Shown: positions 1,089 through 59,384, counted from the stretch's first letter. The stretch is DNA of 63,176 nt from Octopus sinensis (GCF_006345805.1 NW_021831878.1:1-63176), one strand, 5' to 3'. Numbers and translations are program-made. Notes: generated from the sequence alone by a model not told the origin.

Positions 1089-1163
1089 CGTCATATACAA
1101 GGTTTGAATAAGGAGGACAAGTTGTTCTACCCCACCGGGTATACAATGATCCGAGACCGGGTT
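1089..1163 (-). CDS. Copy 1 coding exon 3 (75 nt, phase 1-1): (K)PGLGSLYTRWGRTTCPPYSNLVYD(G), start of the NC1 domain
   Basis: Acceptor ttaatttcgcag, donor GTTAGT, open frame, and the YTRWGRTTCP motif typical of short-chain collagen C4-like NC1 domains. Confidence 0.9.
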
Positions 1164-1699
1164 CTGCGAAATTAAAATGAAATAAAGTAGTTTAAAAGAA
1201 AGAATTGGGGAATCACTTACAAAGTAGGTTGTTGGATGGGAAGGAATTGATGGAGAAGAGAGAAATATAGAATTTAAGAAAGAACGAGTGAATGAATGAA
1301 AGTCAGAACGAAAGATGTAAATAATAAGAATAAATTGTAAAGAAAGAAAAAAGACATTTGTCTGTTGAGCCTGTTGGTGACGTTGATGTCAAAGATTTGA
1401 GAGATTAATCCCAGAATATCAGAATGTGTATCGGTCTCCGCTATGAACGGATGTATGTATGATACGTAAACTTGGGTATGAGTATATATACTTCTCAATA
1501 GAATAATGATAAAATATTCGCCAGGTGCGAATATTCATCGGTCAATTACAAATATCAGTTTGGAGCTCGGCGCAAATAAGGCCATCATAACTACAATATG
1601 AAAATAACAACCATACCGCATCATTTGTCGATTTAGTTAAAAGACATCGCATCCGGATCTCGAGTAGAGGAGTCCGTTCGATAAATGTATAGCACACCC

Positions 1700-3030
1700 C
1701 ACACAACACCGGTGCAACCAGCAAGAAGTCTGGAACTAAATATGGGGTGTTTGGCGTGGGAGCACAAAATTGACGCTCTCAGGACATCAAAGCAGATCAA
1801 GGAGGGAACAACCTTTAATAATTGAGAATTAAACTGTCTGAATTGTTAGATATAATCTGCCTGTAAGATATAATCGGTGTCTGCTCTAAAAAATTTCGTT
1901 TGTCCGGCTTTTGCATCCAAATTGAGAGTGATCCACCTGAATGAAGTTGGACATCGAAATGGATTCGTGATTGTATTATTTTTTTCGGCAGGTTCTTCTT
2001 CGGTTGAACGCTTATTTGAGCTAAACTCACTTAAATGTGATAAAGCTGCTGGTGAAAAGCAGGTTCGGCTTGATATTTTAGAAACCTTAAATACAGATGG
2101 TATTCTCTGAGTGTCCCATGTACGCTAGGTGGATGGGACCTCTGGAAAAAATACCAAGGCAATGAAATATAGGGTGACAATCACAATTTCTTCGGACAGA
2201 GACCAAGGAGTGTGCTCGAATTATAGAAATGTCTACACTAGATGTCAAGAAAAGATTTGTAGGAAAATTGTCGCGCCCAAGATTACCGTCCGACACGCGG
2301 TACACTCGACCTTTTAGACGTTCAAAACAGATCTTCCAGCAAATACAGAAATATTTCCAAAGTTTAAACGCTATAAACCACGAAAAGGCACACGATCACG
2401 TGCCCTGGGTATTGTTTTGGATGGTTTTCCAGGAAGGTGAGTTTAGTGGGCAAATCATGGTTGCCATAAAGTACTTATATGGATGTTCAAATGTTTGTAT
2501 TTCTGTAAAAGTCGAAAGTTTTCAACGTGAAGGTTTCACTTAGTTGAAGTGTGCATTGTTAGTGCCCCTTCTCACATTCTTTTTTGTGATCTGGTTGAAT
2601 ATGCGCAGCCATTGTGGTAGAGGTATCCCAATTCATCTCTACGTGGTCGGTCGACTGTTATTTGTAGACGACATGCTGCTACCAGATTCGTCTGATGGTC
2701 ACCAACAACGTGCACTGAATTGGTTGACAAATACGCACTGTGTAGGAAAGTGGAAAATCATTATTTCGGGTCTCTATTCACGAATGATTGGAAACACAAG
2801 AGTGGACAGAATGCTGAATTGTAGATATAAACGCAGTGAAGCGCCAGCTCAGGGCATTTTATTCTCAAAAGAAGAGGGCATTCTATGCTTATCGTATGCA
2901 AGCCGGTGGGGCTCGCTCTGAGCACTCTAACTTTTTCACAGTGAACGTACCGGCCACCTAGGACACTCGGCAAAGAGCTCCCTCAGAGGAACCGTGCGGG
3001 CCGAAACAATTATCGACGTAGCACTGCAAA
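1700..3030 (+). mobile_element. Decayed RTE-clade LINE fragment (most of the endonuclease region deleted in this unit)
   Basis: Fragmented translations resemble the RTE reverse transcriptase: KAAGEK..LDILETLNTDGIL, CSNYR, HDHVPW..LWMVFQE..GQIMVAIKYLY, LLFVDDMLL (YADD-like). Many stops and frameshifts. Boundaries approximate. Confidence 0.75.
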
Positions 3031-3251
3031 TATGCTCATATACACGCAATAAATGGCATAGTATATTAGAATAACATTTTATTTAGGAACTTATTGTAAA
3101 ATATTTTAAAATAAATTCAGGCAAGTGTCTTAGTATATACTATCGTAGACATGTGGATAGTAATGTGGAACTAATTCAAAGTTGGTGAAATTATAAATCA
3201 TTGGTTAAGGAGACACGGATAAAAGACTTTAGCTATAAAATTATTTCTTAC

Positions 3252-3303
3252 TTGGTGTGTCATCAGGTTTATCGTCGAGAGATTTCTTGGAGATGAAACG
3301 GTT
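3252..3303 (-). CDS. Copy 1 coding exon 2 (52 nt, phase 0-1): NRFISKKSLDDKPDDTP(K)
   Basis: Strong acceptor tatttctattttttcacag and donor GTAAGA; phases bridge exon 1 to exon 3; conserved in all five units. Confidence 0.85.
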
Positions 3304-3409
3304 CTGTGAAAAAATAGAAATAGCATCATATAAATAGAACTTCAGGGTATTTATTATCGTTTAGAACTTAAAACAATGCAATAGATGACAACATATTCGA
3401 GCAGGTATC

Positions 3410-3998
3410 ATTGCCAACACTACCATCTCAACCCCTTAGGAATCTTCTAGAAGGCGCTTCCACCCTGTCAAACGATTTCTGAACAATAACAGACAATACA
3501 ACTCTGCATTTCAAATGACATCGTTTGGTGAATCTAAGAAGATAGATAAACATGAATTTACGCCGACGTCAAAGTTCAAGGGCAAGTCTATCCCATCATT
3601 GGTTCTCTGGTACCCGCGAATGAACAACCACAGTTCCTCCAAATTTACTCTATTAGTGATGTAGGACAACAAACCCGACGTGAGGTGTCAAAATTTCCGA
3701 TGATGGGTCGTGTTAGACACAGCGCACACTGCTGCAAAGGAGAGTATATCCACTGACATTTCGGTGCGTTCAAAAATCACTCAAACTCCACATCCAATTT
3801 TGCAAGACAGGTTACGGCCTGAAACACTCCAAACGGACGCATAGCATGTTGCTTAGTCGAATTAGCCCAGCATTTACTCTACAAATGTTTTGTTGTCAAT
3901 GTTGCACTTTCCCATATCACCTTTTTTAAAATGACTGGTATATATTATATACCATCTTTGCCATTTTAATCCCCAGCAATGCCGGGTATGACTGCTAG
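3410..3998 (+). mobile_element. Internally deleted Helitron (Rep N-terminal remnant plus hairpin-CTAG 3' end)
   Basis: Decayed NSAFQMTSFG...VQGQVYPIIGS...PQFLQIY motifs; imperfect hairpin cccagcaatgccggg (3972-3986) followed by CTAG (3995-3998) and T. 5' boundary approximate. Confidence 0.7.
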
Positions 3999-3999
3999 T

Positions 4000-4033
<34 letters not shown>

Positions 4034-5250: not shown

Positions 5251-5257
5251 TGCCACG

Positions 5258-5264
5258 CCACACA

Positions 5265-5354
<90 letters not shown>

Positions 5355-7679: not shown

Positions 7680-7823
7680 CGTTTTCGATTTCTCTTCCAT
7701 TTTTCCTATTCTTGAATCTTGATGAAGAATCACGATCGTCAGAACGAGAAGAACCCCAAAAGCTATGAGAGAAGAAATGGAATAACGCTGCGAAATATTC
7801 CTGGACAGTTGTGCGAAATCCAT
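7680..7823 (-). CDS. Copy 1 coding exon 1 (144 nt): MDFAQLSRNISQRYSISSLIAFGVLLVLTIVILHQDSRIGKMEEKSKT, type II signal anchor
   Basis: ATG start, ~17-residue hydrophobic stretch preceded by basic residues, perfect phase-0 GTAAGT donor; conserved in four units. Confidence 0.85.
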
Positions 7824-8239: not shown

Positions 8240-8897
8240 AGTACACAGACACACACAAAACACACACACACACAAACACACACACACAAACACACACACA
8301 CACACTGACACACACACACACTGACACACTGACACACACACACACACACAGACACACATACACACGCACACACTGACATACATACACACACACACACTGA
8401 CACACACACACACGCACACTGAGAAACACACACACACTGACACACACACACCGATACACACACAAATACAAACACACATACACACTGACACACCCACACA
8501 CACACACACTCTCACACACACACACTGACACACACACACTGACATACACACACACACATACACTGACACACACACACACACACTGACATACACACACACA
8601 CGCACACACACACTGACACACATACACACACTGACATACACACACACACACAGACACACACACACTCACACACACACACACTGACATACTCATACACACA
8701 TACACACATTAACACACACACACACATTCACACACACACACATACACTGACGCACACACACACATACACACTGATAAACACACACACACACACTGACCCA
8801 CACACTGTGACTCACACACACTGACACACACACACGCTGTGACACACACACACACATACACACACACGGACAGATGCACACACACACACACACACAT
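8240..8897. repeat. Degenerate (CA)n / (CTGACACACACA)n satellite-like tract
   Basis: Visible periodicity; source of the spurious VC/HT ORFs. Homologues near 21310-21785, 38430-39185, 50660-51275 and 60940-61395. Confidence 0.9.
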
Positions 8898-10567: not shown

Positions 10568-11071
10568 TCAATATTTACTGCACACAACACAGGTTAATTC
10601 TCTCGACATCGACATACGGTGGACATGGCAATGAACCACAAGCAGCCTGAACGAAATACAGTAGAGCTCCATCTTCGTTTCTGTAACCCGCTGGATCAGC
10701 TTCTGGTGCATAATCCACACACACATATTCTTGCCTGCCCTTTTCTGCGTGATGACTAGCCATCAAATATCCTGAATACTCAGCTGTCCAACCAGAGTAA
10801 CACTTTGTCCTGGCTGGTAACATCATAACGACAGCAGGTTGTCGTGTCAAACAGACAGCGCACGGAACGTTGTGCTCATGAATTGATTCAGCGCGTTAGC
10901 AAAAGAAAAGAGTTTATTAGTCGGGTAATACTGTAGTTGATATTCACTGCCATGAATGTAACCACCTTTTTCAACTTCTGTCGTTATAATTGGCCCAAAT
11001 GGGGTCGTTAGGTAGACACAAGAGATTACTTCCGCCACCTGTGTGGTCGTACCATTGTCCACCAGCCACAC
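10568..11071 (-). pseudogene. Copy 2 terminal exon, NC1 domain, with indels (pseudogene or consensus error)
   Basis: Acceptor ttattcttactaattcaag. Reads VAGGQWYDHTGGGSNLLCLPNDPIWANY..VPCAVCLTRQPAVVMMLPARTKCYSGWTAEYSGYLMASHHAEKGRQEYVCVDYAPEADPAGY..ACGSLPCPPY. Indels: +1 near 10985, +2 near 10892, net +1 near 10603. Confidence 0.85.
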
Positions 11072-13329: not shown

Positions 13330-13404
13330 CGTCATATACAAGGTTTGAATAAGGAGGACAAGTTGTTCTACCCCACCGGGTATACAATGATCCGAGACCG
13401 GGTT
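13330..13404 (-). CDS. Copy 2 coding exon 3, intact
   Basis: Acceptor ttttaatatcacag, donor GTTAGT, PGLGSLYTRWGRTTCPPYSNLVYD. Confidence 0.9.
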
Positions 13405-13959: not shown

Positions 13960-15870
13960 CCAATACCGGTGCAACCAACAAGAAGCCTGCAACTTAATCT
14001 GGCGTGCGTGGGGTGGGAGCACAAAATTGACGGTCTCAGGACACGAAAGCAGATCAAGAAAGGAACAACCTTTAATAAATGAGAATTAAAAAGTCAAAAT
14101 TGTTAGATATAATCTGCCTGTAAGATATAATCGGTGTCTCCTCTACAAAATATCGTTTCTCCGATAGCGTACACCTGGATATAGGCTTGAAACTCCACTA
14201 CGCAACTCTGGTGCCAACAATGTCTGCACAGGTGGGATTAGGATACTCTCAATCCCCAGCTTTCGGATTGTATTATGGAGTGAAACCTACTAGGTGTGAG
14301 GGTTCACCTCTTGAAACTAAGGCTGAATATGAAAGACCACTGTGGCTGTTGAAAGTATATGCAGCAAACAGCTGGGTCAAATACATATCCTTCCTAAGCA
14401 AATTCACCTCAGCTTTAGATATATTTGGGGCAAAGTCATTTGTCCTGCAAGGAGACTTCAGTGCACACCTTGGCACTGATACCCGTGAGAAGGATTGATT
14501 GGAAGGAATGTCGTCAGTGAACTTAATGGAGAGGTCATAGCAGCCTTCTGTGAAGGATACACACACTCCACTCTATGGTATAGATATTATTTTAAGACAG
14601 GGATATTTATAAGGGTGCCTGGTATAGAAATAGTTGGTGACAGAGGTTTCTGATAGATTTCGGTCATCTTTCACTCTTTGCTGAACGTTCGGGTAAAAGG
14701 AAGGGGTGGAGTTGTCAACTCGTCACTACCTAAATGTCTGAAAACCTGAAAATTCCTACAGTCTGCCGAACACTAGAAATTGTTAAGTCCAGTGCGACCT
14801 ACAGAATACAGTTGGAAGCCGCAGTGGATGCTGGAATCAGAATCAAAATTGTGGAGACTTTTGCATCCAAATTGGGAGTGACTATCCTGAATGAAGTTGG
14901 ACCTCGAAATGGATTCGTGATTGTATTATGTTTTTCGGCAGGTTCTTCTTCGGTTGAACGCTTATTTGAGCAAAACTCACTTAAAAGTGACAAAGCTGCT
15001 GGTGAAAAGCACGTTCGGCTTGATATTTTAGAAACCTTAAATACAGATGGTATTCTCTGAGTGACCCATGTATGCTAGGTGGATGGGACCTCTGGAAAAA
15101 ACACCAAGGCAATGGTAATATGGGGAGACAATCACAATTTTTTCAAACAGAGACCAAAAAGTGTGTTCTAATTATAGAAAAGTCTACACTAGATGTCAGG
15201 AAGAGATATGTAGGGAAATTGTCGTCCCAAGATTACTGTCCGGGACGCAGTACACCCGACCAGAGAGTCGTTCAAAGACAGATCTTCCAGCAAACTTTGA
15301 AATATTTCTAAGGTTTATACAATGTAAACCACGGAAAGTCACGCAATCACGTGCCCTTGGGCAGATTGTGGAATGTTTACCATGAAGGTGTGTTTAATGG
15401 GCAAATACTGGTTGCCCTAAAACACTTATATGGATGTTCAAATGATTGTATTTATGTAAAAGTCGAAAGTTTTCAACGTGAAGGTTTCACTTAGTTGAAG
15501 TGTGCATTGTTAGTGCCCCTTCTCACATTCTTTTTTGTGATCTGGTTGAGTATGCGCACCCATTGTGGTAGAGGTATCCCAATTCATCTCTACGTGATTG
15601 GTCGACTGTTATTTGTAGACGACATGCTGCTACATGATTCGTCTGATGGTAACCAACAACATGCGTTGAATGAGTTGGCTGCCGAGTACCCCTGGGAAGG
15701 ATTGACAAATACGCACTGTGTAGGAAAGGGGAACATCATTATTTCGGGTCTCTATTCACGAACGATTGGAAGCACAAGAGTGGACAGAATGCTGAATTGT
15801 AGATATAAACGCAGTGAAGCGCCAGCTCGGGCTTTTGATTCTCAGATGAAGAGGGATTGGTACAATTCTC
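13960..15870 (+). mobile_element. Decayed RTE-clade LINE (APE endonuclease and RT remnants)
   Basis: DIIGVSSTK, LLKVYAANS, FVLQGDFSAHLGTD (GDFN motif), KAAGEK, GRST.DQ, LLFVDDMLL. Boundaries approximate. Confidence 0.85.
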
Positions 15871-16114
15871 GACGTATCGTTGCATATATACTCATATACA
15901 CACAATAAATGGCATAGTGTATTAAAGTAACATTTTATTTAGGAAATTATTGTAAAGTAGAACATATTTTGAAATAAATTCAGGCAAGTGTCTTAGTGTA
16001 TGCTATGGTGGACATATGGATAGTATTGTGGAACTAATTCAAAGTTGGTGAAATTATAAATCATTAGTTAATGAGTCAAGGGTAAAAGACTTTAGCCATA
16101 AAAATAGTTCTTAC

Positions 16115-16166
16115 TTGGAGTGTCATCAGGTTTATCGTCGAGAGATTTCTTGGAGATGAAACGGTT
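16115..16166 (-). CDS. Copy 2 coding exon 2, intact
   Basis: 52 nt with canonical splice sites, NRFISKKSLDDKPDDTP. Confidence 0.85.
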
Positions 16167-20741: not shown

Positions 20742-20885
20742 CGTTTGCGATTTCTCTTCCATTTTTCCTATTCTTGAATCTTGATGAAGAATCACGATCG
20801 TCAGAACGAGAAGAACCCCAAAAGCTATGAGAGAAGAAATGGAATAACGCTGCGAAATACTCCTGGACAGTTGTGCGAAATCCAT
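20742..20885 (-). CDS. Copy 2 coding exon 1, intact (MDFAQLSRSISQ...MEEKSQT)
   Basis: 144 nt, ATG start, GTAAAT donor, open frame. Confidence 0.85.
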
Positions 20886-21256: not shown

Positions 21257-21822
21257 ACTGTTTTAATATTCATTGTGGGAAGTATTTCGTTCAACAGACG
21301 AATACACAGAAGCACGCGCATACACACACACACACACACACACACACTGACACACACACACTGACACAAACACGAACACACACACACCCACACACACTGA
21401 CACACAGACACACACACGCACACACACTAACACACACACACTGACATACACACACACCAACACACAAACCCACAGACACCAACACACACTGACACACACA
21501 CACAGATACATTGTCTTACACACACACACACACACACACACACTCACGCACACACATACACATTGACACACAGACACTGACACAGACACACACACTGACA
21601 CACACACACACACGCTGACACACACACGCACACACACTGACACACACACATACACTGACACACACACACACATTGACACACACACACACTCCCACACACA
21701 CACATACACTGACACACACACACACATACACTGACACACACACACACACACACACCGACACACACACACACACACACTCACACACTGTTTTAACATTCAG
21801 TGTGGGAAGTATTTCGTTCAAC
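21257..21822. repeat. ~39-bp direct repeats (actgttttaa.attca.tgtgggaagtatttcgttcaac) bracketing a CA-rich block in the B-type spacer (also ~60886-61432)
   Basis: Motif occurs twice in both B spacers and once in the A spacers. Confidence 0.75.
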
Positions 21823-21949: not shown

Positions 21950-23622
21950 CCACCCATACATACATATATACATACATACATATATACATACATACATATA
22001 TACATACATACACACTTACATACACACATAGATACATACATGCATACATACACACACACACATACATACATACATGCATATATACATACAAACATGCGTA
22101 CATACATACACACCCACATACATACATACATACACACATACATACATACATGCATACATACACACTCGCGTATATACATACATATATACATACATACATA
22201 CCCCCATACATATATACTTACATACACACACATATATACATATATATACATACATACACACATACATACACACATACATACATACAAACATACATACATA
22301 CACACACATACATACATACATGCATACATACTTTCATACATACATACATACATATATGTATGCATATATTTATACATATATGTATGTATATATGTATACA
22401 TGCATGTATGTTTGAATGTAAGCGTGTATATATCGATAGACACATATACACATACATATATATATACATACATCCATACATACATGCATATATACTTACA
22501 TCCATCCATCCATCCCTACATACATACATACTTGGTGGCTGCCCCCTCGTTATCGAGTATGGGCATTGCTCGGTGCTTAATCAATGTTGTTAACTTGCAA
22601 TGCCTGTGCATGAAGATTTTTTTTAAAGCGAGGAAAGTGTGTGCACTGTGTCAATCCCAGTCACTAAGCAACAGCAGCCATAATCCGAAAAAAAAACAAG
22701 TCAACATCATTGGAAACCACTGAGCGGCAGTTTTATATCGGAGTTATCCCAGTTACCTGAATTACCTTCTCCTAGAAGGATGCCCTAACAAAGTCTAGGA
22801 GTCCTTCACTCCCAATGGTTTAACCGCGCGATGGGGTATTCAGTCCGATTATTTCTATGTCCCCGCGCATGATACAGCCTTAACACATTTATTGGATGGC
22901 CGTTGACTCTCAAGAGTTCCACCGCTCTTTGACGGGTTTTGTTTTTCATCCAGCAGGGTGTCCAATAAACTCCCTCCTCACCAAGCAAGTTTGGTGGGGT
23001 TGACGGTTTAGTCGCCGACGACCCGACAATGCAACAGGTTGTACTGGGTTACATGTTACCAGTAGCACACGAAAGTGACCTGACATACATACATACATGC
23101 ATACATACCTACATATATACATACATACATACATACATGCATACATACATGCATACATACATACATACATGCATACATACATGCATACATGCATACATAC
23201 ATACATGCATACATACATACAAGCATACATTCATGCATGCATACATAATACATACATACATACATGCATACATGCATACATACATACATACATACATACA
23301 TACATGCATACATGCATACATACATACATACATGCATACATACAAGCATACATTCTGCATGCATACATAATACATACATACATACATGCATACATGCATG
23401 CATACATACATACATACATACATACATGCATACATGCATACATACATACATTCATGCATATATACATACATACATGCATACATACATACATGCATACATA
23501 CATACATATATGCATACCTACTTACATTCATGCATACTTACATACATACATACATACATGCATACATACATACAGACATACATACATACATACATACATA
23601 CATACATACATACATACATACA
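21950..23622. repeat. Two long degenerate (CATA)n arrays (21950-22530, 23085-23622) flanking a non-repetitive block that recurs at ~61970-62530
   Basis: Visible directly; source of the MYVC/HTYI pseudo-ORFs. Confidence 0.9.
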
Positions 23623-25576: not shown

Positions 25577-26070
25577 TCAATATTTACTGCAAACAACGCA
25601 GGTTAATTCTTGACCATTGACATACGGTGGACATGGCAATGACCACAAGCAGCCTGAACGAAATATAATAGAGCTCCATCTTCGTTTCTGTAACCTGCTG
25701 GATCAGCTTCTGGTGCATAACCCACACACATATTCTTGTCTTCCTTTATGATTATAATGCGCGGTCATCAAATATCCCGAATACTCAGCTGTCCAACCAG
25801 CGTAACACTTTGTCCTGGCTGGTAACATCATAACAACAGCAGGTTGTCGTGTCAAACAGACAGCACACGGAACGTTGTGATCATGAATTGATTCAGCGTT
25901 AGCAAAAGAAAAGAGTTTATTTGAGTAGTGGGATATTTCATATTCACTGCCATAAATGTAACCACCTTTTTCAACTTCTGTAGTATAATTGGCCCAAATG
26001 GGATCGTTAGGTAAACACAAGAGATTACTTCCGCCACCAGTCTGGGTATGATGTTGTCCACCAACCACAC
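25577..26070 (-). pseudogene. Copy 3 terminal NC1 exon (B-type 3' flank); -2 near 25722 and -1 near 25642
   Basis: ORF 25703-26068 VGGQHHTQTGGGSNLLCLPNDPIWANYTTEVEKGGYIYGSEYEISHYSNKLFSF...YVC; the domain continues in shifted frames to CVVCSKY-stop. Confidence 0.85.
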
Positions 26071-26269
26071 CTAAATTGGTTAGAATAAATCAAGTAAAAA
26101 AGATGTTAAGAAAAATTATATATGAAATAACGGAAACATTCATTACAGTTAAAAGAAGTCATGTTTAGCCACGTGTGAACGAATTGTGGTGTATATATGT
26201 TAGTGTTTATGTGAGTGCAAGCGGTGTGTTGCTGTATGCTTGAGATCATAGCTGTGCATTTGCATTCTC

Positions 26270-26313
<44 letters not shown>

Positions 26314-26315
26314 GT

Positions 26316-27232
26316 TAAGCAACAAGGATATCGAGAGATAATGCAGTGCAATTGTTTCATGCAACTCCATTTAATTGAACAATACAATCATTACATCAAT
26401 TTAAAATATAGAGGAATCTTCAGCTGCACAAATACATAGGATTTAATTAAATTGAAACAGATTGACACATTAGTATAATTATACCTAAAATCTCCAAGAA
26501 GCTAAGGAGATACACAAAGAACATGTTGTCTCTATTTCAGCATAGAAGTTAATAAAATTATCAAGAAATTTATGAATACTTATGAATAGAAAAAATATTC
26601 AACAATTTCTATCCTTTTGTTATAATATTCTTCTTAATAATCCTTTGGAAAACCCTAAACTTCAACTGTATTCATAGCAACATTGTTTAAAATATTAACT
26701 ATAATATATGATAAGACCTTCGTTTCATTGTCAATAGTCTGCCAGTGTGCGACTCCCTTAATTATCAGTTAACAACCCTTGTTTAAAGTTTTCCCTTACT
26801 AAACCTCATGGTATTGCTTATAATAATTCTTGATTTTTTTATGACTATACCAACTATTATGTCTGTCTACCCCCTAAACCCTCCCTCTAACAGATACTGC
26901 CCTATGTTCTCTCAGCCTTAGATATACAAAGGATTTGTAAACAATTAAAACTGACCCCATAAAGACAAAAAAATCAGTGACAAGCCGACCTTCATGATAA
27001 TTTTATTAACTGCTATGCTGAAGTAGAAACAACATGTTCTATGTAATTTCTTGGAGATTTTAGGTATAATTATACAAATGTGTCCATATGTTCTAATTTA
27101 ATTAAATGCTACGTTTTTGTGCAACTGAAGATTGCTCTACATTTTAAACTGATGTAATGATTGCATTGTTCAATTAAATGGTGTTGCATGAAACGAACGT
27201 ACTGCATTATCTCTGGATATCATCGTTGCTTA
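26316..27232. mobile_element. Older foldback element, arms 26316-26563 and 26995-27232, each with a decayed hammerhead motif
   Basis: Imperfect inverted arms of ~240 bp. Minus 26342-26428: TGCAG-CTGAAGA...GAA-ACAATTGC-A-CTGCA. Plus 27120-27206: TGCAA-CTGAAGA-TTGC...GCAT-GAA-ACGAACGT-A-CTGCA. Confidence 0.75.
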
Positions 27233-27323
27233 GTTTAATTTTAATCCCCTTACTTTGAAATTGTATGGATAATGCCGTACTAAATTCTGGAGCCTCAACT
27301 TAAGTACCATATTCATCCGAATC

Positions 27324-27362
<39 letters not shown>

Positions 27363-27411
27363 CATTCATATATATATATTATATATATATATATATTATA
27401 TATATATGTAA

Positions 27412-27469
<58 letters not shown>

Positions 27470-27499
27470 TAATATATACATATTTGAATAAGAAATGGA

Positions 27500-30286: not shown

Positions 30287-30361
30287 CGTCATATACAAGT
30301 TTTGAATAAGGAGGACAAGTTGTTCTACCCCACCGGGTATACAATGATTCGAGACCGGGTT
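30287..30361 (-). CDS. Copy 3 coding exon 3, intact (PGLESLYTRWGRTTCPPYSKLVYD)
   Basis: 75 nt with canonical splice sites. Confidence 0.9.
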
Positions 30362-33097: not shown

Positions 33098-33149
33098 TTG
33101 GCGTATCATCAGGTTTATCGTCGAGAGATTTCTTGGAGATGAAACGGTT
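33098..33149 (-). CDS. Copy 3 coding exon 2, intact
   Basis: 52 nt with canonical splice sites. Confidence 0.85.
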
Positions 33150-37865: not shown

Positions 37866-38009
37866 CGTTTTCGATTTCTCTTCCATTTTTCCTATTCTTG
37901 AATCTTGATGAAGAATCACGATCGTCAGAACGAGAAGAACCCCAAAAGCTATGAGAGAAGAAATGGAATAACGCTGCGAAATATTCCTGAACTGTTTTGC
38001 GAAATCCAT
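37866..38009 (-). CDS. Copy 3 coding exon 1, intact (MDFAKQFRNISQ...MEEKSKT)
   Basis: 144 nt, ATG start, GTAAGA donor. Confidence 0.87.
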
Positions 38010-39110
38010 TCTGGTGACAGTTGTCGGTTGTAAGTGATACTTCGTGTGGCTTCAACAAAAGATCGAGATGCGAGGTTTAAGCTGAAGACCTGTAACTGAA
38101 TTCCACGTATTTATTGAGCGCACAACAACCCAGCTCTGGCATAGATCTTATCGTAAATTTATGAACCAATGCGATTGGTGGAACTGTAAAAGCGGGTGTG
38201 AACTTGTCTGACAGGTTTAATTATTGGAAAGAGATGGTTTGATATAGTCACACAATAATTAGCAAAATATTTTGATGAATGAGAGACACGTTTAAGGTGA
38301 AATGATTCCTGTTTCTGGATATATTATGATATATTTATTTACTAATGTTGTTATTTAATCTTATTTGTTATTCTTGGGAAACTGTTTTAATATTCAGTGT
38401 GGGAAGTATTTCGTTCAACCAATGAATACACAGACACAAAGACACACACACACACACACACACACACACTCCCACACGCACACGCACACAATACATACAC
38501 ACACACAAACACACACACACACACACTGACACACACACACACTCACACACTGACACACACACACACACACAGACAGACATACACACGCACACACTGACAT
38601 ACATACACAGACACACACTGACACACACACACACACCGACACACACACAAATACAAACACACATACACACTGACACACACACACACACACACTCTCACAC
38701 CACTGACACACACACACTGACATACACACACATACACTGACACACACACACACTGACATACACACCACACACACTGACACATACACACACACACTGACAC
38801 ACACACACGCACACACACACTGACACACATACAACACTGACATACACACACGCACACTCACGAGACACACACACACACACACACTGACATACTCATACAC
38901 ACATACACACATTAACACACCACACACATTCACACAACCACATTCACACACACAACATACACTGACGCACACACACACATACACACTGATACACACACAC
39001 ACACACCCTGACACACACAAAGACACACACTGACCCACACACCGTGACTCACACACACTGACACACACACACGCTGAGGCACACACACACATACACACAC
39101 ACGGACACAT

Positions 39111-39182
<72 letters not shown>

Positions 39183-40863
39183 ACAAAAATGCGGGGAAAA
39201 TGCAGGCTCGTACGAGCGACCGCAGTTACTGTGGGGGCACAAGGTTGAGGTCAACTCCTCTAGCGAAGTATTTATCAAACAGAAATACCGAAGGGAGGTA
39301 ACTCACGACAGACTCCAGCCTGGCGCTCTAATGGCGTCACTTACTCGTTGTTGTTGACTATGTTTAAGTTAAAGCTATGGCTTTAAGTTTGTCCAGATAT
39401 TCCCCACTTCGGTATTTTATTTTGATAACGGCTGAACTGGAACCCGATAGGGAGCAGCACTGGACTGACATGCTGTTTTTGCAACTTTTTGCACTGAATT
39501 TGCCTTTAGAGTTTGAATTATGCCATTATCACATTTTAACGAACCTAAAAATTGCTTATGCCTAATACTGAGCGCTAATACTGTTCACTGGGGACGCCAT
39601 GTTGAATGTTTTCCATATATTCATTTGTCAATTTGCATTTCGTGCTTTCATATTACTTAATTATTATTCTTTTTCTCTAGCTTTTTCACAATCGAGCATT
39701 CTTATGGCACGCAATTAATCGGACAAAAAACGTGCTGCCACCCACAGATCCCTCTTTCCACGGACCTTCGTTTATCTGGCAGCCATTCTACAAACTCCCA
39801 CATACAAGGAGCAATCATGCTGGGTATAGTGTGAAAGACTCACCATGTTGCACTGATTCCACCTAATGCATATTTTATAAGTGGTGTTCCTTTCCTTACT
39901 AAGTCATTTATGTGTGTTACAGTTATTGTATGCATGTATCTCGAAGCAAGTTCCTCTTCTGCGAGTTTGATAGTTTTATGTTACAGACGGAGATAATTTG
40001 TTGAACTTGATGTTTTGTGGTGTTGCTGTAGATTCGGTTGATGCTGTTCCTGAGGTGTACTCATATTTCTTGGTGGTTTCATGTTTTATTTTGGCACATC
40101 AGTGTTCAGGGAACGATGAGAGGCTGCGTGTGTAATGTGACGCTAGGCTGTGTGTGTGATTTTTGTAGAAAAGCGGGAATATGTGAATGTAGGTTGAAAA
40201 TAGTTCATCGTGGGACGTGTACTTGTACCCTTGTCGAAAGTGTTTCTTGAAAACTTCAATGTTTTAGTAACCTGACAAGTAGTTAGGTAGTCAACATTTT
40301 GTGGTATTTCTTCAGTGGATATCAAATATCCTTTATTAGGTAATATCCGCCATTGGATTGCAGAGCTTTCATCGCATCGATTGTAGTTACAATGATACGT
40401 ATGGGAGTATTTTTTTTATTAAACCCTCATGATTTAGTGACGTTAGTTATTAGCTTTTATCGTGTTTTCTGAAGATTGATCATGAAAGGGTGATATATTT
40501 GTACGGAGGTGCTTCTTTTGGGGATTGGTTTCATTTTAAGACGGAATACAACACACATTTAAACGAATCATCATTTTATTTCAACATTTAAATTTGATAA
40601 ACTGAACCTCATACAAAGTATTCTAGAATCATTCCCCGAGGATTATATCGTTCTGTTAAGCTATTTGTCACATTCTATGACGTCTCTGTTGTTTCGTTTT
40701 GAATATTTTCTGAAAACTTGTAGCAGCAATTTATTTAACGACATATATTACTTGGATAAAATATTGCGAAACACAATTACAAGAAACGTATATGTTGCTT
40801 TATTATATTATAATTTATGATTCGCCGACATAAATTTTCATATAGAACGAATGTAAATTCGAT

Positions 40864-41362
40864 TCAATATTGACTGCACACAACGCAGGTTAATTCTCGA
40901 CCATTGACATACGGTGGACATGGCAATGAACCACAAGCAGCCTGAACAAAATATAATAAAACTCCATTTTCGTCTCTGTAACCTGCTGGATCAGCTTCTG
41001 GTGCATAGTCCACACACACATATTCATGTCTGCCCTTATGACTATGACGCTCGGTCATCACATATCCTGAATACTCAGCTGTCCAACCGTCGTAACACTT
41101 TGTCCTGGCTGGTAACATCATAACAACAGCAGGTTGTCGTGTCAAACAGACAGCGCACGGAACGTTGTGTTGATGAATTGATTCAGCGTGAGCAAAAGAA
41201 AGATTTTATTAGTTGGGTAGGATTCCAGTTGATATTCACTGCCATAAATGTGACCACCTTTTTCATCTTCTGTCGTATAATTGGCCCAAATGGGATCGTT
41301 AGGTAGGCATAAGAGATTACTTCCGCCACCTGTCTGGTCATACTTTTGTCCACCAACCACAC
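40864..41362 (-). pseudogene. Copy 4 terminal NC1 exon; one missing A in a homopolymer near 41200
   Basis: ORFs 41142-41360 and 40864-41145 join into a full domain ending PPYVNGRELTCVVCSQY-stop if one base is restored; acceptor ccaattgtag. Confidence 0.87.
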
Positions 41363-43013: not shown

Positions 43014-43086
43014 CGTCATATACAAGTTTGAATAAGGAGGACAAGTTGTTCTGCCCCACCGGTATACAATGATCCGAGACCGGGTT
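43014..43086 (-). pseudogene. Copy 4 exon 3 (73 nt, two homopolymer deletions)
   Basis: Splice sites intact; GG->G and GGG->GG relative to the other copies. Confidence 0.8.
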
Positions 43087-45743: not shown

Positions 45744-45793
45744 TTGGTGTCATCAGGTTTATCGTCGAGAGATTTCTTGGAGATGAAACGGTT
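45744..45793 (-). pseudogene. Copy 4 exon 2 (50 nt, one GT dinucleotide lost)
   Basis: Splice sites intact; ggtgtgtc -> ggtgtc. Confidence 0.78.
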
Positions 45794-50097: not shown

Positions 50098-50238
50098 CGT
50101 TTCGATTTCTCTTCCATTTTTCCTATTCTTGAATCTTGATGAAGAATCACGATCGTCAGAACGAGAAGAACCCCAAAAGCTATGAGAGAAGAAATGGAAT
50201 AACGCTGCGAAATATTCCTGGACATGTGCGAAATCCAT
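50098..50238 (-). pseudogene. Copy 4 exon 1 (141 nt; -2 and -1 deletions)
   Basis: ATG and GTAAGT donor intact; the hydrophobic anchor is readable in ORF 50094-50351. Confidence 0.78.
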
Positions 50239-50668
50239 TCTGGTGACAGTTGTCGGTCGTACGTGATACTTCGTGTGGCTTCAACAAAAGATCGAGATGC
50301 GAGGTTTAGCTGAAGACCTGTAACTGAATTCCACGTATTTATTGAGCGCACAACAACCCAGCTCTGGCATAGATCTTATCGTAAATTTATGAACCAATGC
50401 GATTGGTGGAACTGTAAAAGCGGGTGTGAATTTATCTGACAGGTTTAATTATTGGAAAGAAATGGTTTGATATTGTCACACAATAATTAGCAAAATATTT
50501 TGATGAATGAGAGACACGTGTAAAGTGAAATGATTCCTGTTTCTGGATATATTATGATATATTTATTTACTAATGTTGTTATTTAATTTTATTTGTTATT
50601 CTTGGGAAACTGTTTTAATATTCAGTGTGGGAAGTATTTCGTTCAACCGACAAATACACAGACACAAA

Positions 50669-50704
<36 letters not shown>

Positions 50705-53653
50705 CTGACACACACACACACACACACACTGACACAAACACCAACACACACACACACATGCACACTCACACACACGCACACACACACACACTGACACACT
50801 GACACACTCGGACACACACACACCAACACACACACCTACACTGAGACACACACACTGACACACACTGACACACACACACTGATATACATACACACGCACA
50901 CACTGACACACACACGCACAAACACACACACACTGACACACCACCAACACCACACACCTGACACACACTCACACACACCACTGATATAGACACACACCAC
51001 ACTGACACACACACCCACAAACACACACACACTAATATACACCCACACAGACATACACACACACACACACACACACCTGACACACACAAACACACATACA
51101 CACACACTGACTTACATACACACACTGACACACACACCACTCACACACACATACTGACACACACATACTCACACACACACACACACACTGAAACACACAC
51201 ACACAAAACTGACACACACAGACAGTGACATACCACACACATACTGACACACACACATTCACACACACACACACAAATATGCGGGAAAATGCGGGCCCGT
51301 ACGAGCGACCGCAGTTACCGTTGGGGCGCAAGGTTGAAGTCAACTCCTCTAGCGAAGTATTTATCAAACAGAAATACCGAAGGGAGGTAACTCACGACAG
51401 ACTCCAGCCTGGCGCTCTAATGGCGTCACTTACTCGTTGTTGTTGACTATGTTTAAGTTAAAGCTATGGCTTTAAGTTTGTCCAGATATTCTCCTCTTCG
51501 GTACTTTCTTTTGATAACGGCTGAATTGGAACCCGATAGGGAGCAGCACTGGACTGATATGCTGTTCCTGCCGCTTTCTGCACTGAATTTGCCTTTAGAG
51601 TTTGAAATATGCCATTAGCACATTTTAACGAACCCAAAAATTGCTTATACCTAATACTGAGCGCTAATACTGTTCACTGGAAACGCCATGTTGAATGTTT
51701 CCATATATTCATTTGTCAATTTGCATTTCGGGCTTTCATATTACTTAATTATTATTCTTTTTCTCTAGCTTTTTCACAATCGAGCATTCTTATGGCACGC
51801 AATTAATCGGACAAAAAACGTGCTGCCACCCACAGATCCCTCTTTCCACGGATACCTTCGTTTATCTGGCAGCCATTCTACAAACTCCCATATACAAGGA
51901 GCAATCATGCTGGGTATAGTGTGAAAGACTCAACATGTTGCACTGATTCCACCTAATGTATATTTTATAAGTGGTGTTCCTTTCCTTACTAAGTCGTTTA
52001 TGTGTGTTACAGTTATTGTATGCATGTATCTCGAAGCAAGTTCCTCTTCTGCGTGTTTGATAGTTTTATGTTACAGACGGAGATAATTTGTTGAACTTGA
52101 TGTTTTGTGGTGTTGCTGTAGATTCGGTTGATGCTGTTCCTGATGTCTACTCATATTTCTTGGTGGTTTCATATTTTATTTTGGCACATAAGTGTTCAGG
52201 GAACGATGAGAGGCTGCGTGTGTAATGTGAGGCGAGGCTGTGTGTGTGTGTGATTTTTGTAGAAAAGCGGGAATATGTGAATGTTGATTGAAAATAGTTA
52301 ATCGTGGGACGTGTACTTGTACCCTTGTCGAAAGTGTTTCGTGAAAGCTTCAATGTGTTAGTAACCTGATAAGTAGTTAGTTAGTCAACAGTTTGTGGTA
52401 TTTCTTCAGTGAAGATCAAATATGCTTTATTAGACAATATCCGCGATTGGATTGCAGAGGTTTCATCGCATCGATTGTAGTTACAATGATACGTATGGGA
52501 GTATTTTTTTTATTAAACCATTATGATTTAGTGATGTTAGTTATAAGCTTTTATCGTGTTTTTTGAAGATTGATCATGAAAGGGTGATATATTTGTACGG
52601 AGCTGTTTCATTTGGGGATTGTTTTCATTTTAAGACGGAATACAACACATTTAAACGAATCATTTTATTTCAACTTTTAAATTTGATAAACTGAACCTCA
52701 TAAAAATGTATTCCTAGAATCATTCCCTGAGGATTACATCGTTCTGTTAAGCTATTTGTCACATTCTATGACGTCTCTGTTGTTTCGTTTTGAATATTTT
52801 CTGAAAACTTGTAGCAGCAATTTATTTAACGACATATATTACTTAGATAAAATACTGCGAAACATAATTACAAGAAAGGTATATGTTGCTTTATTATATT
52901 ATATTTTATGATTCGCCGACATAAATTTTCATATAGAAACGAATGTAAATTTCTATTCAATATTTACTGCACACAACACAGGTTAATTCTCGACAATTGA
53001 CATACGGTGGACATGGCAATGAACCACAAGAAGCCTGAACAAAATGCAGCAGAGCTCCATTTTCATTTCTGTAACCTGCTGGATCAGCTTCTGGAGCATA
53101 GTCCACACACACATATTCAAGTCTGCCCTTATGTACAGAACTCGCGGTCATCAAATATCCCGAATACTCACTGTCCAACCAGCGTAACACTTTGTCCTGG
53201 CGGGTAACATCATAACAACAGCAGGTTTTCGTTGTCAAACAGACAGCACACGGAACGTTTGTGCTCATGAATGATTCAGCGTTAGCAAAAGAAAAGAGTT
53301 TATTTGTTGGAAAAAGTTATTTCATATTCACTGCCATAAATGTGACCACCTTCTTCAACTTTTGTCGTATAATTGGCCCAAATGGGATCGTTGGGTAGAC
53401 ATAAGAGATTACTTCCGCCACCTGTGTGTTCGTACCATTGTCCCCACCACACCACTTGAATTAGTAAGAATAAATCAATTAAAAAAGATATTAAGCAAAA
53501 TTATATACGAATAACGGAAACATTCATTACAAATTTTCACTTAAAAGAAGTCATGCTTAGTCACGTGTGAACGAATTGGTGGTGTATATATGTTAGTGTT
53601 TATATGAGTGTAAACTGTGTGTTGCTGAATCGTAACTGTACATATACCTTCTC

Positions 53654-53752: not shown

Positions 53753-55789
53753 ATATATATATAAATATATATATATATGTATGTATATGTATGTATATAT
53801 ATCGTAGTAAGCAACGAGGATATCCAGAGATAATGCGGCACGATTGTTCATGCAACTCCATTTAATATATATATATATTTTGTGTATACGGGTAAGTTTT
53901 TGTGGTTACGACGTGGATTATTATGTATGTTTGCATGGGGTAGGTGTTTTTCGGTGGATGTCAATAGAGTAGAAATAGAAAGATATTTCATAACGCATGC
54001 ACTCGTGTTTATCCGAAATGGAAAAGATGTTCACGTGTGAACGGGGATATTTTGGGTGGTGGAAAATGTAGGAGGTTTGAGTAGGACAATACGGGAGACG
54101 ACGAGATGCAGAGAAGTGGTGGGTAACCGTCGATGAAATGTTGTTTAGTCGATCATACGAGAGTCAGTGGCTAAACCTCTCGTGTAGACTTGGACGAATC
54201 AGGCTTACATAGACGTTATGATCACACAGACTTTTTTTCATGCAATACACAGAAACGAGGTGGGAGGAAAAATTGTGAGGTTCAATGATGGCGTAGTGCT
54301 TAAGATGAATGGACGGCGGAGTGGGCGACCGATAAAGGATACGTGTAGGGTTTATAGAGAGCAGATTCAGAGCATTTTTGGGGATTGTGAGCTTGATTGG
54401 GGAAGCCGTTGGAAGCATCAGCTTTGAATTGGAAGTTTCGGAATTACCTTACAAAGATATCCTGGATAATTAATGAGGTGATGTTGTGCGTGAAAAGAGC
54501 AAGGTTTTAGCGATAGGACGATTTCAGTGAGGCGGAGAAGAATAGAAGTGCATTCTGTACTCTGTTGTGTTCTCTCACTAATATTTAGTCTCTCTATATT
54601 TTTCTTAATGAATAAAGTCCTCAGCTTTTTCCATCAGATACAGTGTGTGGCTTGTCCAGTCCTCATTCTACATTGTGCGTTCATTACATTAACCATTTAC
54701 AGTCACTGTCATCAATTCTAATAGACTCTATTCAATTTAGCCCACACCTACGATCATTGGGCACTCTAGTTAATGATAGACAAGTGGCCACTATTCAGCT
54801 CTAGTCACTCACGTACAATACCACCATCCGTAGCCTGTACAATTGATCACCAGTTAGCATCCTTTTCACTTGGTCCGTAGTAGACAACATATAATATTCT
54901 GATTTGACCAAATACCACAAGGGTAAGCAGTCTTGTGTAGTGTCTGTATAGTCTACAGGTATATACGTTTGAAACGTGACATATCATAAAAGGATTTGAG
55001 AATGTTTATGTCAGACAACCCGACAAAGGGTGAGTGTGTGTGCGTGTGCGTGAGAGAGAAAGAGAGTTAAAAAAAAGAGAAAATGAGAGGTTATAAAAGA
55101 GAGCAAGAGAATGACAAAAAGAGAATGAGAGTCAGAAATATAAAGTATACTAACCGTCATATACAAGATTTGAATAAGGAGGACAAGTTTTTTCTGCCCC
55201 ACCGGGTATACAATGATCCGAGACCGGGTTCTGTGATATTAAAATGAAATAATGTAGTTTAAAAGAAAGAATAGGGGGATCATATACAAAGTAGGTTGTT
55301 GGATGGGAAGGAATTGATGGAGGAGAGAGAAATATAGAATTTAAGAAAGAACGAGTGAATGAATGAAAGTCAGAACGAAAGATGTAAATAATAAGAATAA
55401 ATTGTAAAGAAAGAAAAAAGACATTTGTCTGTTGAGCCTGTTGTTGACGTTGATGTCAAAGATTTGAGAGATTAATCTCAGAATATCAGGATGTGTATCG
55501 GTCTCCTCTATGAACGGATGTATGTATGATACGTAAACTTAGGTATGGTATATATACTTCTCAAGAATAATGATAAACTCATAGAATGATAAAATATTCG
55601 CCAGGTGCGAATATTCATCGGTCAATTACAAAATATCAGTTTGGAGCTGGCGCAAATGTGGCCATCATAACTACAATATGAAAATAACAACCATACCCCA
55701 TCATTTATCGATTTAGTTAAAAGACATCGCATCCGATTTCGAGTAGAGGAGTCCGTTCGATGAATGTATAGCATACCCCACCCAAAACC

Positions 55790-58700
55790 GGTGCAAACAG
55801 CAAGAAGCCTGCAACTTAATTTGGGGTGCGTGGGGTAGGAGCACAACATTGACGGTCTCAGGAAATCAAAGCAGATAAAGAGGGGAACAACCTTTAATAA
55901 TTGAGAATTAAAACGTCAAAATTGTTAGATATAATCTGCTGTAAGATATAATCGGTGTCTCCTCTACAAAATTTCGTTTCTCCGATAGCGTACACTTGGA
56001 TATAGGCTTGAAACCCCACTACGGTACTATGGTGCCAAAACGTCTGCACAGGTGGGATTAGGACACTCTCAATCCCCAGCTTTCGGATTGTATTATGGAG
56101 TGAAACCTACTAGGTGTGAGGGTTCACCTCTTGAAGCTAAGGCTGAATATGAAGGACCACTGTGGCTGCTGTAAGTATATGCAGCAAACAGCGGGGTCAA
56201 ATACAAATCCTTCCTAAGCAAATTCACCTCAGCTTTAGATATATTTGGGGTAAAGTCATTTGTCCTGCAAGGAGACTTCAGTGCACACCTTGGCGCTGAT
56301 AACTGTGAGAAGGATTGATTGGAAGGAATGTCGTCAGTGAACTTAATGGAGAGGTCATAGCAGGCTTCTGTGCCGGATACACACTCTCCTCTCTATGGTA
56401 TAGATATTATTTTAAGACAGGGATATTTATAAGGGTGCCTGGTATAGAAATACTTGGTGACAGAGGTTTTTGATAGAGTTCGGTCATCTTTCGCTCTTTG
56501 CTGAACGTTCGGGTAAAAGGAGGGGTGGAGTTGTCAACTCGTCACTACCTAAATGTCTAAAAACCTGAAAATTGCTATAGTCTGTCGAACACTGGAAATT
56601 GGTAAGTCCAGTGCGACCTACAGAATACAGTTGGAAGCCGCAGTGGATGCTGGAATCAGAATCAAAATTGTGGAGACTTTTGCATCCAAATTGTGAGTGA
56701 CCATCCTGAATGAAGTTGGACATCGAAATGGATTCGTGATTGTATTATTTTTTTCAGCAGGTTCTTCTTCGGTTGAACGCTTATTTGAGCTAAATTCACT
56801 TAAAAGTGATAAAGCTGCTGGTGAAAAGCACGGTCGGCTTGATATTTTAGAAACCTTAAATACAGATGGTATTCTTTGAGTGACCCATGTATGCTAGGTG
56901 GATGGGACCTCTGGAAAAAACACCAAGGCAATGGAAATATGGAGTGACAATCACAATTTTTTCAAACAGAGACCAAAGAGTTTATTCTTATTATAGAAAA
57001 GTCTACACTAGATGTCAGGAAAAGATATGTAGGGAAATTGTTGTGCCCAAGATTACTGTCCGGGACGCGGTACACCCGACCAGAGAGTCATTCAAAGAAA
57101 GATCTTCCAGCAAATATTGAAATATTTCCAAGGTTTATACGCTGTAAACCACGAAAAGGCACACGATCACGTGCCCTGGGGCATGTTGTGGATGGTTTAC
57201 CAGGAAGGAAAGTTTAATGGGTAAATACTGGTTGCCATAAAGTACTTACGAGGGGCGTTCAGTAAGTAATGCCCCTGACCCACTTCCCATAGTAGTAGAG
57301 CAACAAAACTCGGCACAGGTATTAGTCTTTTTCTACATAGGAACCACTCAGAGTTACGCATTTCCCCCATTGTTTGATGCAGCTCTGGATCCCGTTTTCG
57401 TAGAAGACCCCAGCTTGGTCCTCCAACCACGACGAGACTTCAGAAATCAAGGCTGCATCATCTGGTAAACGCTTTCCTTTCAAAAACCACTTCATGGGTG
57501 GGAAGAGGGGAAATTCAGAGGGTGCAAGATCAGGAGAGTAGGGGGATGGGGGAGAAGTTCATAGCCGCACGAGTGTGCTTTTGATCAGGCGACACGCGAG
57601 TTGTGGACCGGAGCGTTGTCCTGCAAGAGGAGGATGCATTTGCTGATCTTGCCCCGCTTCTTGATTTTGATAGCTTCTCTTAATTTCCTCAAAAGTGAAG
57701 CATAATAGGCTCCTGTAATTGTGGTACACTTTGCCAGAAAATCTGTCATCACTACCCCGTCCTGGTCCCAGAAGACTGTGAGCGTGACCTTGCCAGCGGA
57801 GGGCTGCACCCTTGCCTTCTTTGGAGGAGGTGAGTCACGGCGCTTCCACTGCATTGACTGGGCTTTGGTCTCTGGATCAGAGTGATGGACCCAGTTTTCA
57901 TCCTGCGTAATCAGTCTTTTGAAATATTTTGACTCATCTTCTTGGCACATCTCCAAATTTATCCTCGAGCATTCAACGCGTTCTTGCTTCTGGAAAGGTG
58001 TGAGCAACCTGGGAATTCATCTGGCAGACACCTTTTGCATATGTAAATGGTCATGAATGATAGTTTCCACAGACCCGGTACTAATCTTGACTTCATGGGC
58101 TATTTGGCGAATAGTTATGCGTCGATCTTCCAAAATGGCAGCCTCAACTTGACGGACAGATGCCTCATCAATGGCAGAAGGGGGCGATCAGATCTGGGAG
58201 CTGTTTCCACAGAGTTCCGACCAGTTTCAATTCACGATGCCAGCGTTTTACAAGGTCATATGATGGGGCATCATCACCATAAGTTACTTTCATTTCATCA
58301 AAAGTTTCCCGTGGTGTGCGTCCTTTCAAATACAAAAACCAGATCACTGCTCGACACTCAACAGCCTCCATTTCACACCTGACACAGTTCAAACACCTGT
58401 AAATCAGAAACCATAATTAGTTCAGAGCTGTAATTTCCCACTTATTCTTTAGAGATATAAATAATTGCACATGCAAAATTTCACATGCAAACAACTGCAA
58501 TTGGGTCAGGGGCATTACTTATTGAACGCCCCTCGTATATGGATGTTCAAATGATTGTATTTATGTAAAAGTCGAAAGTTTTTAACGTGAAGGTTTCACT
58601 TAGTTGAAGTGTGCATTGTTAGTGCCCCTTCTCACAGTCTTTTTCTGTGATCTGGTTGAATATGCGCAGCCATTGTGGTAGAGGTATCCCAATTCATCTC

Positions 58701-58990
58701 TACGTGATCGGTCGACTGTTATTTGTAGACGACATGCTGCTACCTGATTCGTCTGATGGTCACCAACATCGAGCAATGAATTGGTTGGCTGCCGAGTACC
58801 CCAAGGCAGGATTGACGAATACGCACTGTGTAGGAAAGTGGAACATCATTATTTCTGGTCTCTATTCACGAATGATTGGAAGCACAAGAGTGGACAGAAT
58901 GCTGAATTGTAGATATAAACGCAGTCAAGCGGCAGCTCGGGCATTTGATTCTCAGATGAAGAGGGCTTGGAATAATTCTCGACGTAGTTT
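55790..58990 (+). mobile_element. Decayed RTE LINE, unit 5 copy, interrupted by the mariner
   Basis: Homologous to 13960-15870; the sequence resumes exactly after the TA at 58536-58537. Confidence 0.8.
57249..58535 (-). mobile_element. Full-length (1287 bp) defective mariner transposon, irritans/Bytmar-like
   Basis: 34-bp TIRs (cgaggggcgttca(g/a)taagtaatgcccctgaccca, 1 mismatch), TA TSD, empty site in four other units. Transposase 57322-58371 has ITQDENW, QDNAPVH and HPPYSPDLAPS motifs, in-frame stops and a frameshift. Confidence 0.95.
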
Positions 58991-59384
58991 TGCATATATA
59001 CTCATATACACTCAATAAACGGCATAATATATTAGAGTAACAATTTATTTAGGAAATTATTGTAAAGTAGAACATATTTTGAAATAAATTCAGGCAAATG
59101 TCTTAGTATATATTATTGTGGAACAAATGGATAGTATTGTGGAACTAATTCAAAGTTGGTGAAATTATAAATCATTGGTTAATGAGTCACGGGTAAAAGA
59201 CTTTAGCTATAAAATTAGTTCTTACTTAGTGTGTCATCAGGTTTATCGTCAAGAGATTTCTTGGAGATGAAACGGTTCTGGGAAAAAATAGAAATAGCAT
59301 CATATATATAGAACTTCAGGGTATTTATTATCGTTAGATCTTAAAACAATGCAATTGATGACAACATATTTGGACAGGTATTAT

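Follow-up and report, generated by a model that had tools for sequence, protein, structure and literature searches.

What is encoded by a stretch of octopus DNA in which four exons recur in five consecutive units, when no single unit can be read through as it stands? The stretch, from Octopus sinensis (GCF_006345805.1, NW_021831878.1:1-63176), is called the window below and is 63,176 nucleotides long. An earlier reading of it, made from the sequence only, had seen a hidden tandem array of genes for collagen-less, membrane-anchored proteins with a domain of the spongin NC1 type. The explanation we favour as a whole, with a probability of about 0.7, is that the window belongs to the octopus tandem array of "short-chain collagen C4-like" genes, each with four exons, and that most of the small insertions and deletions (indels) in them are assembly errors.

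Self-comparison revealed tandem segmental duplication over nearly the whole window: five units (g1 to g5) of about 12.1-17.0 kb each are 88-94% identical. Every unit contains the same exon set on the minus strand, bar missing pieces (exon 4 of g1 and exon 1 of g5), and the exon-3 spacings reported before were reproduced. Reading the window exon by exon, we found an AG acceptor and a GT donor at all junctions, with phases 0/1/1, as predicted. All four exons had been described as short; this is true of exons 1-3, while exon 4 measures around 500 nucleotides. Exons 1-3 of g1, followed by a consensus exon 4 made from its four copies, encode a protein of 256 amino acids that has the ten cysteines and the motifs quoted for the domain; the predicted protein of about this length thus exists as a composite, and no single unit yields it as read. 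The consensus protein starts with MDFAQLSRNISQRYSISSLIAFGVLLVLTIVILHQDSRIGKMEEKSKT, followed by NRFISKKSLDDKPDDTP, by KPGLGSLYTRWGRTTCPPYSNLVYD and then by a segment beginning with glycine; a cysteine-rich part of about 165 residues comes next. The product of g1 exon 1 is identical to that of exon 1 of the Octopus vulgaris proteins P0001, P0006 and P0031. The sequence-only reading had missed the broken frame of every copy and the 5' truncation of g5, placing exon 1 of that unit past the window end. Instead, a segment of about 3.65 kb, with exon 1 and the promoter or proximal upstream region, is absent from g5, because the sequences that flank it in g2 are joined directly there (breakpoint in Table 1).

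The array is not hidden, as had been supposed. Searching with the consensus protein returned 359 homologues, the best of which are annotated proteins of 253-260 amino acids from O. vulgaris, O. sinensis, O. bimaculoides and Argonauta hians, named "short-chain collagen C4-like" by NCBI and UniRef. The closest database match is O. vulgaris P0001 (CAI9737331.1), 92% identical overall, and its gene has the four exons, phases and GT-AG sites predicted for the window. Dozens of annotated paralogues across these four octopods share this exon structure; proteins such as CAI9737331.1, XP_052830979.1 (O. bimaculoides) and XP_036366807.1 (O. sinensis) resemble the window copies in exon number and phases, in an identical exon 1-3 product, in the anchor, stalk and ten-cysteine domain and in their tandem layout on a single chromosome. 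In O. vulgaris, the array occupies about 11.285-11.563 Mb of OX597833.1, with at least 14 units and the consecutive accessions CAI9737328-45, in an annotation built with Iso-Seq and RNA-seq (PMC10700109). A Logan contig of 1,104 bp (SRR8281674) is intronless and contains an uninterrupted open reading frame (ORF) of 283 amino acids with anchor, stalk and domain; it looks like the spliced mRNA of a relative. The tryptic peptide DDGGAVLYFVQSVCGSLPCPPYVK of a paralogue has been reported from O. vulgaris ink by proteomics (PMC10142993). Members of the family are thus not only annotated but also transcribed and translated.

The window is nevertheless distinct from the loci already described. It is identical to none of the six O. 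vulgaris loci compared, which cover most of the 11.285-11.563 Mb interval (typical best identities 94-98%), and its exon 4 copies match no annotated protein, cluster members included. None of the window copies is identical to an annotated octopod protein; all are frame-broken, and exon 1 is missing from one. What the window adds is one more segment, apparently a damaged one, of a gene family that is known and annotated. Present assemblies and annotations resolve the octopod array poorly. At one O. vulgaris locus (L007, OX597833.1 11,304,611-11,387,854), which has a 100-N gap inside it, the 288-amino-acid model P0137 is spread over 63,244 bp of the array; P0131 and O. sinensis P0014 (spanning 117 kb) are models that join exons from different units.

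The assignment of the domain to the spongin short-chain collagen-related (SSCR) NC1 family is supported. Ten cysteine columns are invariant across 40 homologues from several phyla, and no HSQ motif was found in 19 octopod proteins. Both agree with the description of spongin NC1, which has seven cysteines shared with collagen IV, three that are spongin-specific and no HSQ (PMC5395295); cysteine positions were compared by count. The domain is shared with collagen-bearing proteins from amphioxus (P0078, P0079 and P0081), Porites (P0092) and Owenia (P0109), which are 47-53% identical to the consensus, with expect (E) values of 1e-51 to 1e-55, and contain PF01391 and Gly-X-Y runs of 11-20 triplets. 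These likenesses support the predicted domain as the type that databases call "short-chain collagen C4-like" or spongin NC1; the link to sponges rests on the NCBI and UniRef names, the 120 matches listed including no sponge sequence. Like the octopus protein, spongin short-chain collagens and SSCR proteins (Exposito 1991; Aouacheria 2006, per PMC5395295) end in an NC1-like domain with ten cysteines and no HSQ, but where they have a Gly-X-Y domain, the octopus protein has a segment resembling a signal anchor, and a short stalk.

The further homology to collagen IV NC1 is suggested by the structural comparison and not by the profile searches. AlphaFold models were made of P0001, with a predicted local distance difference test score (pLDDT) of 83.6, and of a domain-only paralogue, with a pLDDT of 91.8 and a predicted template modelling score of 0.86. 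In Foldseek searches with both models, the top 16-37 matches were all collagen IV NC1 (E values 4e-5 to 1e-3, probability 0.9-1.0), and this domain was the only significant structural match of either model in the PDB (entries 1LI1, 1M3D, 1T60, 5NAX and 8TYS). A profile comparison with a hand-typed human alpha1(IV) NC1 sequence gave a local motif match, PCAVC...CxxGW..GY, at a probability of 53%; this match is a lead only. Several results weigh against the relationship. The Pfam C4 family (PF01413) matched neither the consensus at E values up to 10 nor the 40 family members at E values up to 1, and sequence and family-profile searches of PDB chains gave no collagen IV match. Foldseek template modelling scores were 0.2-0.3, with root mean square deviations of 15-18 Å, meaning that the overall geometry is not superposable as a rigid body. 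The octopus domain is also smaller than that of collagen IV (about 185 versus about 225 residues) and has ten cysteines rather than 12. No other Pfam domain was found on the NC1-like part of the consensus or the 40 family members. We regard a distant relationship to collagen IV NC1 as the weaker part of the assignment, suggested by the models. The octopus protein further differs from collagen IV in having neither a long triple helix nor a 7S domain. A stand-alone NC1 gene of ctenophores (PMC5395295) sets a precedent for an NC1-type domain without a collagenous part, although that domain is of the collagen IV and not the spongin type, and no membrane anchor or tandem array has been reported for it.

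That the proteins are collagen-less was confirmed. No Gly-X-Y run of four or more triplets is present in the six frames of the 63 kb, and the longest run in all octopod proteins is two to three triplets, so that collagen exons do not appear to be hidden between those identified. Collagen repeats are also absent from most of the 120 homologues listed. Collagen-less relatives occur in unionid and venerid bivalves, Lingula, Owenia, Patiria and amphioxus, and in place of the repeats many of them possess a hydrophobic segment near the N-terminus or a stalk of coiled-coil-like type; anchor and Gly-X-Y repeats are found together in one Owenia protein. Given this distribution, the collagen-less architecture is old and widespread, and the domain has not been "redeployed" here, as had been proposed: anchor-bearing, collagen-less forms are common outside cephalopods, and the octopod speciality is the size of the tandem expansion. 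The open 256-residue frame of the copy consensus, the canonical splice sites and the lack of a description of the architecture in the searchable literature could still be taken to mean that the window holds intact, unrecognised genes that reuse spongin NC1 without collagen in a local and novel way. With all copies frame-broken as read, proteins of the identical type annotated in four octopods and relatives of this old architecture already in the databases, we consider this very improbable.

The state of the frames is the main difficulty. As read, none of the units has an uninterrupted frame: g2, g3, g4 and g5 are interrupted, and g1 is incomplete. When the indels are removed, all four exon-4 copies are free of stop codons and keep the ten cysteines. 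There are no nonsense substitutions in the window copies, all splice sites are intact and the ratio of non-synonymous to synonymous substitution rates (dN/dS, Nei-Gojobori) in framework codons is 0.17 among the copies. To characterise the indels, singleton changes, unique to one unit, were counted in 700-bp alignments of all available units, which consist mostly of intron and intergenic DNA; indels of at most 2 nucleotides were scored as short. Among singletons, the ratio of short indels to substitutions reaches 0.25 in the stretches that contain the broken exons (7.7-11 kb and 29-56 kb), against 0.05 in the parts of the window at 0-4, 12-21.5 and 56-60 kb and 0.06 in the O. vulgaris reference loci. 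The excess is four- to five-fold, affects coding and non-coding DNA alike and has a Fisher p value of about 1e-5 to 2e-8; this division of the window was chosen after the data had been seen, which weakens it, but the totals for the whole window (61 short indels to 348 substitutions) and the reference (25 to 397) differ as well, without any division. In exon 4 the ratio is about 0.46, and the indel density of exons equals that of the flanking DNA. Most events lie in short homopolymer or dinucleotide runs.

Since the alignments are mostly of introns and intergenic DNA, a loss of coding constraint does not explain their indel excess. Together with the lack of nonsense substitutions and of lost cysteines, this leads us to read the frameshifts mostly as assembly errors, and the patchiness of the excess is, as far as the alignments can tell, the signature of errors in the consensus of an assembly from long reads. 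Decay of this block of the array, with pseudogene units and real indels, would also account for some observations. None of the four window copies of exon 4 is intact, whereas 11 of 14 are in the array of the O. vulgaris reference; g5 has lost exon 1; several exons of g4 and g5 have indels, and the singleton substitutions in framework codons of these two units lean towards non-synonymous (3:1 in g4 and 5:3 in g5). The window copies, moreover, have no matching annotated protein, and truncated models are present in the reference annotation too. Decay is, however, difficult to reconcile with the intact splice sites, stop-free substitutions and cysteines, with the low framework dN/dS, or with an indel-to-substitution ratio (about 0.25-0.46) several times the neutral value of 0.05 in neighbouring non-coding DNA and raised in the introns and intergenic DNA of the same stretches. 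We therefore consider general decay unlikely, and that the frameshifts are mostly assembly errors, with g5 and perhaps g4 truly defective, probable. The O. vulgaris reference was assembled from Oxford Nanopore R9.4.1 reads with 10x/Illumina polishing (PMC10700109), and small indel-rich patches are present in it too (L002 2280-5929 and L004 13429-16400). In three independent copies, the length of a coding (TG)n run in exon 4, at GAATATGTGTGTGTGG (window position about 25725, and in the reference copies L002a and L003b), has changed so as to shift the frame; the run is a hot spot of slippage or of sequencing error.

The N-terminal hydrophobic segment, predicted to span about 17 residues, was confirmed: a 19-mer at residues 15-33, with a Kyte-Doolittle mean of 2.67, is kept in all full-length octopod paralogues. 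In the model of P0001, a helix extends over residues 16-53. The cysteine-rich domain contains a conserved NYT sequon, and both features argue that this domain would be located outside the cell. From this we infer that the N-terminal segment may be a signal anchor that leaves the N-terminus in the cell and the C-terminus outside it, giving a predicted type II protein; the flanking charges are balanced, a neutral bias that does not help this orientation. The products may instead be ordinary secreted components of matrix or mucus, their N-terminal segment being a cleaved signal peptide and their loops merely unconstrained. The paralogue peptide found in ink fits such a role, as does the raised expression of related genes among the secreted proteins of the adhesive pedal disc of a sea anemone (PMC6626399), and the dN/dS of the variable loops described below is around 1 and not above it. 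On the other hand, the hydrophobic stretch is long, at 17-19 residues, and comes after a tail of 14-16 residues; no small-residue cleavage motif follows it, and the helix goes on in the model; variability, finally, is limited to a few loops, with the hot spots found again in three other species. Secretion of this kind seems to us rather unlikely, and we prefer the signal anchor.

Differences between paralogues are concentrated in loops at residues of about 96-100, 121-128, 136-144 and 195-199. These patches were defined on proteins of O. sinensis, O. bimaculoides and Argonauta, and dN/dS was calculated on O. vulgaris and window copies; it is 0.75-1.2 in the loop patches versus 0.17-0.23 in the framework. 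Positive selection on the patches gave no firm signal, the ratio not being clearly above 1. As dS is raised too, the variability may reflect relaxed constraint or older alleles, which counts against a special role of the loops. The duplicated units are a mosaic: identity between units is mostly 90-98% in the promoter, in exons 1-3 and in parts of the introns, but falls to 82-88% in exon 4 and the DNA on either side of it. This suggests gene conversion of the 5' half, with diversity kept in the domain. The loop pattern is a modest lead, compatible with variable binding proteins and explained equally well by relaxed loop constraint. The role in recognition rather than matrix, proposed earlier, would fit as a hypothesis suggested by this pattern. 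A more far-reaching version, which we see as a long shot, is that octopods have a repertoire of dozens of type II anchored, collagen-less NC1-like proteins, in which gene conversion keeps anchor and stalk uniform while a few surface loops are kept diverse; these would be variable binding proteins specific to the lineage, derived from the oldest matrix domain of animals and serving in immune, mucosal or ink, or chemotactile recognition.

Table 1. Positions and state of the exons of units g1 to g5 in the window, with the breakpoint in g5.
Feature	Position	Strand	Content or state
g1 exon 1	7680..7823	-	ATG, N-tail, hydrophobic anchor; 48 codons; phase 0 donor GTAAGT
g1 exon 2	3252..3303	-	stalk, 52 nucleotides
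g1 exon 3	1089..1163	-	domain start YTRWGRTTCP, 75 nucleotides
g1 exon 4			beyond window start; g1 open through exons 1-3
g2 exon 1	20742..20885	-	intact
g2 exon 2	16115..16166	-	intact
g2 exon 3	13330..13404	-	intact
g2 exon 4	10568..11071	-	domain; +1, +2 and +1 indels; first stop as read at amino acid 124
g3 exon 1	37866..38009	-	intact
g3 exon 2	33098..33149	-	intact
g3 exon 3	30287..30361	-	intact
g3 exon 4	25577..26070	-	in-frame -3, then -2 in (TG)n run, -1; stop as read at amino acid 213
g4 exon 1	50098..50238	-	-2 and -1 indels; frame lost from amino acid 5
g4 exon 2	45744..45793	-	-2 indel
g4 exon 3	43014..43086	-	two -1 indels
g4 exon 4	40864..41362	-	-1 indel in T run
g5 exon 2	59226..59277	-	open; no exon 1 upstream
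g5 exon 3	55155..55230	-	+1 indel; stop in exon 3
g5 exon 4	52957..53452	-	at least 4 indels; altered sequence right after acceptor
g5 breakpoint	~60839-60841 (feature listed as 60739..60841)	.	intron-1-like sequence (= g2 ~17562) abuts equivalent of g2 21210

Several repeats and insertions surround the exons. Imperfect (AC)n blocks of 0.46-0.76 kb (8243-8896, 21322-21785, 38428-39185, 50656-51275 and 60933-61394) are located about 0.4 kb upstream of exon 1 in the units that have this exon and just past the breakpoint in g5; as similar GT-rich blocks are present in intron 1, repeats of this type may have mediated the g5 deletion. Long (CATA)n/(ACAT)n arrays occupy two of the intergenic spacers only (21955-23622 and 61563-63176), contributing part of the extra length of the 16,957-bp unit and hinting at a higher-order repeat of the array. 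Intron 2 of g5 contains an insertion of about 1.29 kb found in no other unit (57248-58536), with a fragment of a mariner/Tc1-type transposase; its minus-strand ORF at 57585-58007 matches Pfam Transposase_1 (E value 8.5e-23).

Intron 2 also contains minus-strand exon relics (1807-1748, 14064-14014, 31013-30960 and 55886-55839), some 0.6 kb upstream of exon 3. They are related to an exon, SSLLDLLCCPETVNIVLPSKT, which certain annotated paralogues include in their spliced form (P0131, P0137 and P0008), but are degenerate, some with stops, and have no collagen character; a functional extra exon of the SSLLDLLCCPETVNIVLPSKT type in the window was accordingly rejected. A conserved ORF-like element on the plus strand of the same intron (2544-2921, 15495-15908, 32358-32783 and 58647-59018) has no Pfam match, and its FVDDMLL motif is reminiscent of reverse transcriptase; the element is probably what remains of an old retroelement, present before the duplications took place. 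Intron 3 of g3 (26070-30287) is 4.2 kb long, and that of the other units 1.6-2.3 kb. The additional stretch in g3 includes a minus-strand ORF of 136 amino acids (28481-28891) that matches no Pfam family, and is possibly another repeat insertion.

In the overall picture that we propose, exon 1 would encode a short N-terminal tail and the hydrophobic segment of about 19 residues, exon 2 a short, charged stalk, and exons 3 and 4 a spongin-type NC1 domain of about 185 residues with ten cysteines and no triple helix. The hydrophobic segment would serve as signal anchor, N-terminus inside and C-terminus outside, so that the disulfide-bonded domain with its NYT sequon could be displayed on the cell surface or shed; the domain would probably oligomerise as NC1 domains do. 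Variable loop patches on a constrained framework may then make the binding surface differ from copy to copy. Unequal crossing-over would have enlarged the array, homogenisation reaching the promoter, exons 1-3 and some intron parts, and exon 4 and its flanks staying diverse. Most frame-breaking indels would be consensus errors from long reads, g5, which has no exon 1, and perhaps g4 being genuinely defective.

For the gene family, the contribution of the window itself is ordinary: it adds further, apparently damaged, paralogues to those already listed. A general caution follows for tandem arrays in long-read assemblies, in which frameshifts should not be read as pseudogenes without checks at the level of the reads. 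The collagen-less, anchor-bearing form of spongin NC1 appears to be widespread in invertebrates and is seemingly undescribed in the searchable literature; the definition of SSCR proteins as a short collagen plus NC1 is therefore too narrow. In octopods, the combination of a homogenised 5' half with hypervariable loops is a pattern also shown by variable recognition families, and whether these proteins are such a family can be tested.

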